From Phallusia mammillata (taxonomy: Eukaryota), in the NCBI GenBank assembly GCA_965637545.1, contig OZ281499.1, forward strand, positions 20,832,001 to 20,896,000: 64,000 bases of DNA, in the 5' to 3' direction. This document shows, piece after piece, positions 2,307 to 6,349 of this stretch. Position 1 is the stretch's first letter, and each line of letters opens with the position of its first letter. A program made the position numbers and the translations under genes. Below the pieces are notes generated by a model. That model saw nothing but the letters and a program-made list of their open reading frames with translations. It was not told the DNA's origin and did not search any database.

Positions 2307-5300
2307 ATGTCAGATTGTCCAGTTGTGTCAACGCCACTTGGGAAAGTGAGTGGATTTGCATTGGCCAAAGCGAAATGTCCAGATGCTCAACAAGTTTACG
2401 GATACTTGGGAATCCCGTTTGCTAAACCACCAGTTGGCGATCTAAGGTTTAAACCTCCGCAAAGGTAACATTCTTTGGAATTTGTACACAATCTGATTAG
2501 GGCTGCTAGACGAAATTACAAAGACAAGTTTTTTTCGGTTATAGGCTTGTCCTTCATGATTTATTGTGTATTTAAAAAGAATATTGTTTTTAGATAATTG
2601 AGTATTGTGTTAATTCTGTATTGAAAAAAATGGTTTCTGAACATTTTACGTAACTTCACTTGTCTAAAATGACAAATCTGCATAGTGTTAATTTTAAACA
2701 ATCTTGTTCTCGTTTCCAATCACGTCTATTACTTACAAGTGCTGAGCCATGGAAGGGAACAAGAGATGGAACAAAATATCCACCTGGCCCGATGCAAAGT
2801 ACAAGATACGTAGAAATATTTGCGAAATACGTCGCTAATTACCGAGTAGCAGATGAAAATCCGCGAAATTTCGAGGAAGATTGTCTTTACTTGAACGTTT
2901 TCACTCCAAAACCGAGCAACGAGACAAAACTGCCAGTAAGTATTTTAGGCTTTCTAATAATAAGAAACTGCAAACCGCGGTGCCAAAAGCCGGTCTGAAT
3001 TTATCAAACCGAGAAAACATAAAAAGTCTAAAAGCAGTAAATCATCGCAGGTATTAATTTGGTTTTACGGCGGTGGATTTTCTGCTGGTAGCAGTGTTGG
3101 ATATCATGGCCAGACCATATGTGGTTTGCAAGACGTCGTTCTGGTGGTTCCTCAATACAGACTGAATGCTTTTGGATTCATAAGCTTTGGAAAGGAGAGT
3201 TCATGCCCAGGGAATATGGGTTTGCTTGATCAAAAAATGGCAATGGAGTAAGTGAAATATCTGCTAATATTGTGTTTCGGGTAATTTTTATAAATCTGGC
3301 ATGAAAAAACATTTTATGCGTCGTAGTCCTGGTGCCACTATTTAAGAGGGCTAATCAGAAAATATGAAGCGAACGCAACTAAACAGGACTTCGACATTTA
3401 CAGATGGACAAGGGACAACATTCTCGCATTCGGGGGAGACCCCAATAACGTCACTCTATTTGGGCGAGGTGCTGGTGGGATTTCAGTCAGCAGTCACGTG
3501 TTATCGCCTATGTCACGTGGTTTGTTTCATCGCGCCATCAGTTGCAGTGGAGTCGCCAATTGCCAATGTAAGTACGATTGTTGTTTTTTTAACACGAGTC
3601 TGCAAAGCTTTTTTTGTGCTACGGACCAGTTAAAGTCATGCATTACCTGTCTTTGATCAAATTATGAGCGTTTTTGAATTGAACAATCACTGAGACAATT
3701 TTTAAAGAAACGCAGTTTTGGTAACGTTTCTCCAAAACCCAACACGAACGGCCTGCTTTCTTCAGAACAAACGCAAAGAGATTTTGACAAAATTTACATC
3801 GATTCTTTTCCCCATGACATGCATGAGCAGCGTTTAATATCTTGGCATATAGTGAAATAACTTAAGTTTTATTGATGGCACAAAAGCGACAGATCGTGGT
3901 TGACTGAATGTAGCAGGTTTAAACATCCACTTAAGTATTTTCACTTTACAGTGGTAACAAAAGAGAACAATGACGTAAGCACCGGGTTCTTGCTCAAGGA
4001 ACTAGGAATCGAGGACAAAGATCCGGAAGTAATTCTTGCAAAATTAAGAACTCTGTCGGCTAAAGAACTTATGGAAGCTCAAGAAAAGTCCGCCGACTAT
4101 CATGAAAACCCGGTAAGTAGAAATGTCATTTGGTGAATAGAAAAATTTGCAATAGTTTAAAGGGGACTTGTTGCGAGCACCGGTCAAACAGTGAGATTGG
4201 ATCATAAAGCTTTGTTTTATTGAGTTGCATGTTAAACAGACGAAAGCGACCCTTTGAAACGTTGGTACACAAAATTGACACATGTGTCTTTCTTGAAGGC
4301 AACTATTTATTAATAATATTTTGCATAGTGAAAGAAAACAAAGCTGAAAATTCCGCTGCATCTGGCGTAGAGAAAACACATACACATAGCTCATCAAAGT
4401 CGCGCTGAAGTAAAATCGTTGCTGCTAAGGTCGACATAGTGGCTAGAAACTGCTTTGTTTATTCAGCTGCAGAAACTTGACGACTTTGTATCAGTTGTTG
4501 ATGGGAAATTTCTTCCAAAGCATCCGAGAGATTTAGTAACCGATGGTTATTTTGCACCAGTTCCATTTATTATCGGGTGCAATAACACCGAGTTTTGCGG
4601 TGTTTTGGCCGATCGGTTTCCTGAAGGATTTGTCACTGGTGAACTGAGCGAGCAGCAAGCCATGGAATTGACAAGAAACGCGTGGCAAGTGGCAGATAAC
4701 ATCCCAGTAAGTTAATTTTTTATTTGGAACTTGTAGTTTTGGATGTTGTAATTGAGGTAGCACTTATTTGCAAACTCTAAACCAGTGGTTCTCAACCTTT
4801 TTGGCTTTGCGGACCTTTTTTGATACTGTAAGCTAGTTGCGGACCCATTGAAGGTTTAGGTGTTTTTGTACCTTTTATTATTAACAAGCAACCAACACAT
4901 GGTACTTAAATGGCAACCACGTTCGGTCCAGTACCAAAATTTCAATCAGATTGTTTGGGTTGGGACATCAACAAGATAGACCCCTAGGAATCCTGCGGAC
5001 CCCCACTTGAGAACCACGTATCTAAACCGAATGTATGTGGGTTCGATGACAGAACACATACATGCAGAGTTTAAGCAATTTGAAGAATTGTATTTTAAGT
5101 TTTACTACACAAAAAATCAAATAGTTTTTGTATTTCTTTTCTTAGCCGAATAAATTGGATGAAGGTGTCGCATTGGTTAAGCAAGAAATGATGAAGTATA
5201 TTTCGCCGGATGACAAATACAAATGGAGCAAACTTCCTACTAACGTGATGTTAGATACAATCTTTTTATTGCCTGGTGTGGAACAAGCAATGGCTCATTC

Positions 5301-6349
5301 AGGTAAAACCTCTTTTAAATCAGAAAATATGCTAAATATTTTTTTAATCAGAAAATATGCTAAATAAGGTACCTTTGTAGTCTATTTAGACTAGCACTTC
5401 CCTGTGGTTTCCGAATAGTTAAAGGATTTGCAAAACATCATTACCAAATTTGTGATATAAATGGCTTAATGTTTTCCATGAACTTGAAGACAGTCCACCT
5501 AATTTACAAAACGCCATCACACATTTTACAAATCAAGTCTATAGAGTTCTTCTGGCAAATGTATTTTTATTCCGACGTTTCGACGTCCTATACAGGTCGT
5601 CTTCATCAGGTTAAATAACACTGAATGCGACTAGAACAGTGCACGATAAATTTTACAAATATTGTGCATTAGGTGACAATATTCTCAAGTTGTCTGTTTA
5701 GTGTCCTAATAACTATTGCTTTGTCGATTAAATAAGATAACTGTGACATTCACATGCACACAGACGCTGGTAATCCAACCTACATGTACACCCTGAACCA
5801 GCAATTACGAATTCACCATGACAACGCATTTAGCAAGGATATGACAAAGAAGCCTGAATTCTGTGAAGCTGATCATATAGTTGACGAAGTATTTACTTTT
5901 GGTGTTCCGTTTGGCAACGGACCGGTGGCGAAAGAGATGAAGTTCACTGAAGACGAGAAAAATCTCTCCAAGCAGTGGATGTCGTTTATTTGCAACTTTG
6001 CCAAAACAGGGTAAGCAAACTAAGAAATTTCAAATGCACAATTTCAATACAACCATTTTTTTAACCTTAAATGCTTTACTAGTGGGCAATTTTTTTTTTA
6101 AAAACTTGCGCTTGTTTCATCAAACCTGTATGTTTATCACAAGGGTTTAGGTTCGTTTTGGTAATTTTTTTTTTATCTTACTGCAGGAACCCCAACAAAC
6201 CATTGAGTCTGACAAATTGGCCAAGTTTTAAAAGCAATGACCAGCGTCACCTGGTGGTAAAGATACGGCTTGAGCAGGGCGTAGATTTGATGGGTGAACG
6301 ATTCAAGTTCTGGCAAAATCTACGCGCAAAGATGGCAACCACTTCATAA
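2307..6349 (+). CDS. Carboxylesterase type-B fold protein, copy 1 (CES1); intact, 9 exons, 560 aa; nucleophile Ser absent
   Basis: Exons 2307-2464, 2740-2935, 3051-3247, 3404-3567, 3952-4112, 4467-4706, 5146-5302, 5764-6010, 6187-6349, all GT-AG, total 1683 nt in frame. Family motifs: [70 protein letters not shown]. The GxSxG elbow reads GRGAG (3462-3476). Confidence 0.93.
4783..5019. mobile_element. hAT-type MITE in CES1 intron 6
   Basis: TIR CAGTGGTTCTCAA / TTGAGAACCACGT (degenerate). Near-perfect 8-bp TSD CTCTAAAC (4775-4782) / ATCTAAAC (5020-5027). Absent from the matching intron of CES2 and CES3. Confidence 0.8.
5534..5649 (-). mobile_element. 116-bp hammerhead-containing retro-insertion (Penelope-like terminal-repeat fragment or mini-retrozyme) in CES1 intron 7
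   Basis: Flanked by the 11-bp direct repeat ATTTTACAAAT (5523-5533, 5650-5660). Absent from CES2 and CES3. The minus strand has CTGATGA...GAAACGTC followed by AATAAA. Confidence 0.75.
5569..5612 (-). ncRNA. Minimal type I hammerhead ribozyme candidate
   Basis: Minus strand reads cCTGATGAa-GACGACCT-gtat-AGGACGTC-GAAAC-GTC-gg: core boxes, helix II with 7 of 8 pairs, GUC cleavage triplet. Helix I is poorly paired. Confidence 0.6.

Follow-up and report, generated by a model that had tools for sequence, protein, structure and literature searches.

What becomes of an enzyme gene once the catalytic residue of its product has been lost is the question raised by a stretch of 64,000 nucleotides of the ascidian Phallusia mammillata (GenBank assembly GCA_965637545.1, contig OZ281499.1, here C6, positions 20,832,001 to 20,896,000 of the forward strand), referred to below as the window. 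It holds three tandem copies of a type-B carboxylesterase gene, CES1, CES2 and CES3, two of which are intact and carry glycine at the position of the nucleophilic serine. A first-pass annotation made from the letters of the window alone had read them as a maintained family of cytosolic, serine-less pseudoenzymes. The best overall explanation, to which we assign a probability of about 0.55, is that CES1 and CES3 are young, maintained, non-catalytic offshoots within an ascidian family of cytosolic type-B carboxylesterases; on the narrower point, that the two genes encode functional proteins without catalysis, we are fairly confident. The known non-catalytic members of this fold are ancient, so that what first followed the disappearance of the nucleophile is hidden in them, whereas in CES1 and CES3 the loss is recent. 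The array, with its active sister genes at distances of 14 and 68 kb and its decayed copy as internal neutral control, offers a natural experiment on the keeping or losing of a dead enzyme.

Gene Structure of the Three Copies

The copies in the window are as follows.

2307-6349, + strand: CES1, intact, 9 exons, 560 amino acids, type-B carboxylesterase fold, elbow GRGAG
2307-2464, 2740-2935, 3051-3247, 3404-3567, 3952-4112, 4467-4706, 5146-5302, 5764-6010 and 6187-6349, + strand: exons 1 to 9 of CES1
6347-6349, + strand: stop codon TAA at the 3' end of CES1, overlapped by an AATAAA
8686-12477, + strand: CES2, pseudogene of the same clade as CES1 and CES3
32307-35952, + strand: CES3, intact, nine exons as in CES1, 559 amino acids, elbow GRGSG
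32307-32464, 32749-32944, 33061-33257, 33555-33718, 33968-34128, 34558-34797, 34940-35096, 35389-35635 and 35793-35952, + strand: exons 1 to 9 of CES3

The CES1 exons are all bordered by AG and GT and join into a frame of 1683 nt without internal stop (560 codons plus the stop). Database searches were made exon by exon, and joined proteins were built from window coordinates for translation, local alignment and estimates of selection. In the Pfam search six of the nine exons scored above the gathering score of PF00135 (COesterase), in colinear order and covering profile positions 2-471 of 515, and against solved structures of acetylcholinesterase (AChE), carboxylesterase (CES) and BSAL the E-values went down to 2e-16. 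The two further copies, CES2 and CES3, were found by local tblastn of the CES1 model. Both CES1 and CES3 retain 16 of 16 splice sites, and the open frames and AG/GT borders uphold the earlier description of the two as fully intact nine-exon genes. CES2 carries several lesions. In exon 4 (10035-10189) a 9-nt deletion takes out the G-A-G of the elbow and leaves GR---GIS, exon 6 (11038-11277) has an in-frame stop, and exon 7 (11454-11608) is thrown out of frame by the loss of 2 nt; in addition, exon 2 has gained 3 nt and the oxyanion hole has changed from GGG to DGG.

Loss of the Catalytic Serine

The positions on which the catalytic reading depends are these.

3462-3476, + strand: CES1 nucleophile elbow G-R-G-A-G, aligned with GESAG of AChE and CES structures
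3465-3467, + strand: CES1 Arg205 (CGA), opposite the Glu that precedes the nucleophile Ser
3468-3470, + strand: CES1 Gly206 (GGT), at the position of the nucleophile Ser
4590-4592, + strand: CES1 catalytic-acid Glu334 (GCNNTEF), kept, aligned with GINNDEY of Ces2e
5874-5876, + strand: CES1 catalytic His462 (EADHIVDE), kept, aligned with ADHGDE of Ces2e
33613-33627, + strand: CES3 elbow G-R-G-S-G, with Gly at the nucleophile position (33619-33621)

Over its full length, exon 4 of CES1 can be aligned with acetylcholinesterases and carboxylesterases of solved structure (E 2e-16), with GRGAG lying opposite GESAG, and this alignment bears out the glycine that had been noticed at the nucleophile position of CES1 and CES3; the broader claim that every copy carries it does not extend to CES2, in which these codons are deleted. 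Glu334, His462 and the oxyanion YGGGF are present in both intact genes, and the catalytic Glu (GCNNTE) and His (ADH), already recognized in the window, match a pig CES structure as well as Ces2e. In serine hydrolases, without the hydroxyl of the serine no acyl-enzyme is formed and normal esterase turnover is abolished. The alignments thus support the view that CES1 and CES3 are unable to use a serine nucleophile, and since the acyl-enzyme mechanism cannot run without it, their products would be pseudoenzymes.

How the glycine arose can be read in part from the paralogs. The codon CGA is common to the three copies and GGT to CES1 and CES3, the CES2 copy of GGT having gone with the 9-nt deletion. 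About 20 serine-bearing paralogs in the genome have AGT or AGC as nucleophile codon, so that the loss of serine amounts to a single A>G change (AGT>GGT), as had been proposed. Less can be said of the arginine codon, for which CAA had been put forward as the source: CGA is one step from CAA, found in some paralogs, and two from GAA, and the nearest paralogs have GAA and TTG, so that CAA is only one possibility. In the common ancestor of CES1, CES2 and CES3, then, AGT (Ser) would have become GGT (Gly) by one A>G change, and the preceding Glu or Gln would have become Arg.

That the deciding glycine codon is an error of sequencing or assembly, and that the real genes encode serine, is a thought that arises from the single A/G difference on which everything turns; we consider it negligible. 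CGA GGT is read at two separate loci, in both of the intact genes, and CGA persists in CES2. Furthermore, at 3465-3470 the contigs of two DNA runs contain no alternative base and hence no serine at the elbow, although the assembly itself may have been made from these runs. The half-depth variants seen in DNA contigs at 3471 (G>T), 3485, 3506 and 3524 are cross-mapping from CES3.

Beyond the elbow, the changes shared by CES1 and CES3 at otherwise conserved positions are few (S206G, H231C in the ascidian AISHSG motif, and three conservative swaps), and on this comparison the pocket is not rebuilt. A bulky residue after the catalytic His had also been pointed out; the residue (I/V) is there, but it is the same in the serine-bearing sister genes L031 and L032 and in vole Ces2e, and its presence in serine-bearing paralogs makes it uninformative on the loss of activity. 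An alternative is that the two proteins are still enzymes, acting on activated esters through water activated by His and Glu, or through a new chemistry of Arg205. Glu334, His462 and the GGG are all kept, exons 3 and 4 are the most constrained of the gene, and the change from Glu to Arg beside the lost serine is shared and fixed. Nevertheless, it is generally known that removal of the nucleophile lowers the kcat of serine hydrolases by many orders of magnitude and that natural members with Gly for Ser, such as the neuroligins, are non-catalytic; moreover, the serine in the GRGSG of CES3 stands at +1, where the side chain is turned out of the pocket and where CES1 carries Ala. Catalysis without the serine is therefore improbable.

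A Single and Recent Loss

Outside the window (loci outside it bear L-numbers), two genes of the same array on C6 are close enough to date the loss.

C6 ~20.816-20.821 Mb, 14 kb upstream, same array: L032, intact 9-exon gene, elbow GESAGA
C6 ~20.762-20.768 Mb, 68 kb upstream, same array: L031, intact 9-exon gene, elbow GLSAGG

Both are 70-74% identical to CES1, and both retain the nucleophile serine (AGT) and His231 (AISHSG), where CES1 and CES3 have Gly206, preceded by Arg205, and Cys231 (AISCSG). In L031 the retained serine is preceded by Leu (TTG) in exon 4 (L031:4495-4658, C6 ~20.7645 Mb), which indicates that the residue before the nucleophile is variable even in serine-bearing genes of the array.

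A six-frame search of the 240-Mb genome gave 30 exon-4 matches, and GRG was found in only three of them, all copies of the window. In a nucleotide tree the three copies form the group (CES1,(CES2,CES3)) with 100% support, L032 is its sister and L031 falls outside, a topology that implies one loss of serine before two duplications; the serine-less copies are thus one young clade nested among serine-bearing ascidian paralogs. Between CES1 and CES3, identity is 89.8% for the protein and 91.9% for the coding DNA, with 0.21-0.23 synonymous substitutions per site (dS), and the introns of the two genes are 83% identical over the aligned parts as compared with 92% for the exons.

No GRG elbow outside the window copies was met among the best 150 representative proteins or among short fragments, in a search that included no close sister genome and that was dominated, for the representative proteins, by fused multi-copy gene predictions; the protein libraries seemingly lack this genome's own proteins. 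A word search of these libraries with exon 4 returned two short fragments, both serine-bearing, and no ortholog of CES1 or CES3, and a word search with the Phallusia mammillata cDNA protein P0096, which matches a gene on another contig of this genome at 93-96%, as would be expected for Phallusia or a close relative, returned no ascidian relative except P0096 itself. By these comparisons the serine-less group is two intact genes and one pseudogene in a single tandem array, and young (dS ~0.2). The word "family", used of it before, is accordingly too wide, no relative having been detected elsewhere.

Gene Conversion and Selection

The ratio of nonsynonymous to synonymous substitution rates (dN/dS, or omega) between CES1 and CES3 is 0.22 by NG86 and 0.25 by YN00, with a bootstrap 95% interval of 0.15-0.31, and, because the loss of serine precedes the split of the two genes, it covers only the time after that loss. 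This value has to be read together with exchange of sequence within the array. Exons 1, 3 and 8 of the serine-less genes (window 2307-2464, 3051-3247 and 5764-6010) are 86-93% identical in DNA to the corresponding exons of L032 (L032 2230-2387, 3758-3954 and 6782-7028), which equals or nearly equals the closeness of CES1 and CES3 to each other, whereas the remaining exons are only 59-83% identical to L032; exon 1 is ~85-94% identical across all five array genes. Exons 1, 3 and 8 thus look like patches of gene conversion with L032, which would have spared exon 4, where the serine was lost. When they are left out, dN/dS between CES1 and CES3 becomes 0.29-0.34 (interval 0.19-0.43).

A three-taxon split gives a terminal-branch omega of 0.21 on each of the intact genes and of 0.34 on CES2, and constraint is strongest in the core of the gene, exons 3 and 4. 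For the catalytic pair L031 and L032, dN/dS is 0.13-0.15. When neutral substitution was simulated at the observed divergence of each branch, the frame stayed open in 0.02% of the trials for CES1 and in 0.28% for CES3, indels being uncounted. Taken together, the estimates show both intact genes to have been under purifying selection since their split, and the constraint on them is relaxed but clearly present. Since the ratio is 0.22, or 0.29-0.34 without the conversion patches, and not near 1, and neutral evolution would seldom have left the frames open (P 0.0002 and 0.0028), the earlier view that CES1 and CES3 are maintained is strengthened.

Transcript Evidence

Transcripts were sought in Logan assembled contigs, from which starts, strand and expression level cannot be read. 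In run X1 a contig of 112 nt at a depth of ~9 lies on 2372-2464 and joins the end of exon 1 (2464) to a 19-mer that is not intron 1 and that agrees letter for letter with the beginning of exon 2 in CES2 and CES3; this 19-mer is unique in the genome even with one mismatch allowed. The exon-1 part of the contig has four mismatches to CES1, among them 2399 C>T, the same count as L032 exon 1 has, and may be a converted allele or a hybrid made in assembly. The contig shows the predicted splice of exon 1 to exon 2 in a transcript of one or other member of the clade, possibly of the CES2 pseudogene.

Maintenance or Decay

The evidence on selection and transcription bears on whether CES1 and CES3 may be functionless young genes on the way to decay, whose open frames and low dN/dS would come from their recency and from conversion with paralogs under selection. 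CES2, in the same array, is already broken, and three exons of the intact genes are conversion patches shared with the catalytic L032; such conversion can import variation that selection has already filtered and so depress dN/dS, which nevertheless remains at 0.29-0.34 when it is taken from unconverted exons. Several further points weigh against maintenance. The omega of CES1 and CES3 is above that of L031 and L032, which means that constraint has relaxed. Evidence of expression is almost nil and is the weakest link in the argument for maintained pseudoenzymes: it comes down to the one contig of depth ~9, from a run whose RNA nature is a guess, which may belong to CES2, and no CES1 transcript was seen among the assembled run contigs. 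Finally, a GRG ortholog was not found in any other data set searched, which leaves long-term retention unproven.

Recency and conversion nevertheless do not account well for what is seen in the intact genes. At the observed dS of 0.10-0.13 per branch, with introns 83% identical, the probability of the open frames is already as low as that given above from substitutions alone; the exons that stand at 59-83% identity to L032, and thus outside the patches, keep an omega whose upper bound is 0.43; and all 16 splice sites are kept in both genes. We regard decay in progress as rather unlikely, and maintained non-catalytic genes as the better account of CES1 and CES3.

Absence of a Signal Peptide and of Disulfides

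The first-pass annotation had reported an N-terminus (MSDCPVV) without hydrophobic signal, no transmembrane (TM) segment and no endoplasmic reticulum (ER) retention tail, and hydropathy and the C-termini agree with it on each count. The maximum Kyte-Doolittle value of the N-terminus over 9 residues is 1.2-1.4, against 2.1-3.6 in secreted vertebrate relatives, and the maximum over 19 residues for the whole protein is 1.22; the chain ends right after the esterase domain, with ...AKMATTS in CES1 and ...AKMATT in CES3 and no HXEL or KDEL tail. The protein begins 3 residues before the start of the mature vertebrate enzymes.

In an alignment of CES1, CES3, L031, L032, Ciona and Styela proteins and the protein of a Logan mRNA with frog and vole CES and frog and pika AChE, every ascidian member is without the hydrophobic leader of 20-35 residues and without the HXEL tail. 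The cysteines of both disulfides are affected as well: at the first (the C.Q...EDC loop), Met, Ile or Leu replaces the first Cys, giving PMQ in place of C.Q, and at the second both cysteines are replaced (LGI...AKLR in place of SGC...NCLR). PMQ, PIQ or PLQ is found in 10 more paralogs of this genome. The loss of these cysteines lends independent support to a reducing compartment, and with signal peptide and the cysteines of both disulfides missing, CES1 and CES3 look cytosolic.

In vertebrate CES genes the signal peptide is encoded by a short exon 1, and it might be supposed that a 5' exon was missed in CES1 and CES3 too, in which case their products would be secreted or would reside in the ER, as vertebrate CES do. 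The ATGTCAG contains a possible AG acceptor, and the AT-rich DNA upstream contains chance hydrophobic frames that start with ATG. In the 2.3 kb upstream that were scanned for a signal exon, however, only such chance frames occur, and none common to CES1 and CES3 was found. The CES1 ATG is preceded by an in-frame TAA at a distance of four codons, and most paralogs examined have an in-frame stop 2-7 codons upstream; when five upstream regions are aligned, distant paralogs resemble each other from the ATG onwards, and the resemblance ends directly before it. L031 and L032 also begin with MSDCP[VI]V, and 11 further exon-1 homologs at four other places of the genome all start with Met, mostly 1-3 residues before CP[VTI]V; the start Met stands in the same place in at least 16 paralogs and in the RefSeq models of Ciona intestinalis (XP_002121823, MTECPTV...) and Styela clava (XP_039263363, MSSTIVST...), both of which are without leader. 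In L043, an mRNA contig of 1779 nt from Logan, an open reading frame (ORF) of 550 amino acids starts with MECPVV, 33 nt from the 5' end. With the family-wide loss of disulfide cysteines, which would be expected in a reducing compartment, these observations make a missed leader exon very improbable and favour the cytosolic placement of both proteins.

About 40 nt upstream of the ATG, a conserved TTGTTTGCAG is found in CES1 (2260-2268), CES2 (8640-8650) and CES3 (32260-32270), and L031 and L032 have a CAG that is less well matched. This conserved element could serve as acceptor for an intron in the 5' untranslated region or for spliced-leader trans-splicing. In CES1 it is followed by a short upstream ATG (ATGTTTGTAACGCGGTGA).

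The cytosolic look claimed for the serine-less genes is thus reinforced by the lost cysteines, but it does not distinguish them: the state without signal and disulfides seems to be a property of the whole ascidian expansion, including Ciona, Styela and the other paralogs, which read GESAG or GQSAG. Members of this expansion (at least ~20 exon-4 matches with GESAG or GQSAG) lie at C1 13.32-13.41 Mb, C6 8.37-8.39 Mb, C1 31.19 Mb and C7 7.857 Mb (L033-L042). The expansion appears to be an ascidian-wide family of cytosolic esterases. It would have left the secretory pathway long ago, before the lineages of Ciona, Styela and Phallusia split, and would have remained catalytic while it expanded; only afterwards, and recently, did one local copy lose the serine. 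No specific literature on cytosolic or non-catalytic ascidian carboxylesterases was found.

Comparison With Known Systems and Possible Function

The nearest system is the one to which the genes belong. With L031, L032 and the ascidian expansion, CES1 and CES3 share nine exons, the MSDCP[VI]V start, the absence of signal peptide and disulfide cysteines, an insertion before the catalytic His and I/V after it, the Ciona and Styela proteins being 38-40% identical to CES1. The ER-lumenal CES1 and CES2 of vertebrates, best represented among solved structures by 9g73 (Ces2e), 8axc and 1mx1 (hCES1), have in common with the two genes the PF00135 fold, the GGG, the Glu and His positions and the flanks of the elbow; four of their features are missing in CES1 and CES3, namely the signal peptide, the pair of disulfides, the HXEL tail and the Ser nucleophile.

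Neuroligins, neurotactin, gliotactin, glutactin and the ChEL domain of thyroglobulin have the same fold with the nucleophile serine replaced, commonly by Gly, and act by binding. The genome has its own likely non-catalytic cholinesterase-like members, with elbows GEGAG, GQGAG and GSGAG (L026, L029 and L030). Proteins of the neuroligin type are ancient, secreted or membrane-anchored, disulfide-bonded and often multi-domain, whereas CES1 and CES3 are young, single-domain, without signal peptide, TM segment or disulfide cysteines, and arose in a clade of cytosolic enzymes; they resemble the neuroligin type only in Gly for Ser, and its signal peptide and TM segment are absent from them. A link to thyroglobulin through a paper on a Styela thyroglobulin-like protein (PMC12992692) was considered and set aside as not relevant, the protein described there being without a ChEL domain.

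In function the closest analogies lie further afield. Insect intracellular alpha-esterases, such as alphaE7 of Lucilia, from the dietary and detoxification clades of carboxyl/cholinesterases, belong to PF00135, have no signal peptide and lie in tandem arrays that include members with substituted catalytic residues; their presumed substrates are esters of xenobiotics or lipids. They expanded independently, in a different phylum, and their kinship to CES1 and CES3 would go no further than the shared family. Intracellular alpha/beta-hydrolase folds that lack a catalytic residue and serve as ligand receptor or protein co-activator are also found in ABHD5/CGI-58, the NDRG proteins and plant GID1; these are outside PF00135, and their likeness to CES1 and CES3 is one of functional analogy only. 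It is common for a tandem array of enzyme genes to have a branch in which the nucleophile is lost, and the cytosolic setting of CES1 and CES3 is inherited, not new. Neither the recent loss of serine nor the cytosolic expansion overturns current understanding; an ascidian expansion outside the secretory pathway, unlike vertebrate CES, bears on the site of ester and xenobiotic metabolism in tunicates.

As to what the two proteins do, for which the first-pass annotation had conjectured ligand binding, sequestering or a crystallin-like role, the leading proposal is a non-hydrolytic one: the retained gorge might bind, without turnover, ester or lipophilic ligands of the catalytic sisters, so that the proteins would act as cytosolic binders or buffers. 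Arg205 would add positive charge to the pocket and may favour anionic ligands, for example carboxylate products. As a second option, CES1 and CES3 could pair with the active sister esterases as a regulatory subunit. A role as ligand binder or partner is possible, though we would put it at somewhat less than even. The fuller proposal is more tentative still and, taken as a whole, somewhat unlikely: that CES1 and CES3 belong to the type-B carboxylesterase/cholinesterase family as its first cytosolic members without catalysis to be described, repurposed as intracellular ligand binder or regulatory partner of their sisters about 0.2 synonymous substitutions per site after the loss of the nucleophile.

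Repeats and Other Elements in the Window

Very high-copy repeats occur at 5523-5660, within intron 7 of CES1, and at 1374-1721, 4680-4853 and 6246-6400. In DNA run X3 the summed contig depth reaches ~1.09 million at 5550-5723 against ~300 in the flanking single-copy DNA, and runs X1 and X2, presumably of RNA, likewise have short contigs on high-copy repeats. Rfam gave no family in the window at the gathering score, and nothing at E<=1 in 5450-5720. In intron 3 of CES1 (3254-3394) one contig of DNA run X4 skips 139 bases, probably because the intron varies in length or because the contig represents a second haplotype. Lastly, the segments 18874-21397 and 44817-47019, with a G+C content of 0.44 against 0.37 and broken RVT_1, RT_RNaseH, Integrase_H2C2 and rve frames, are remnants of decayed long terminal repeat (LTR) retrotransposons that lie between and after the esterase genes.

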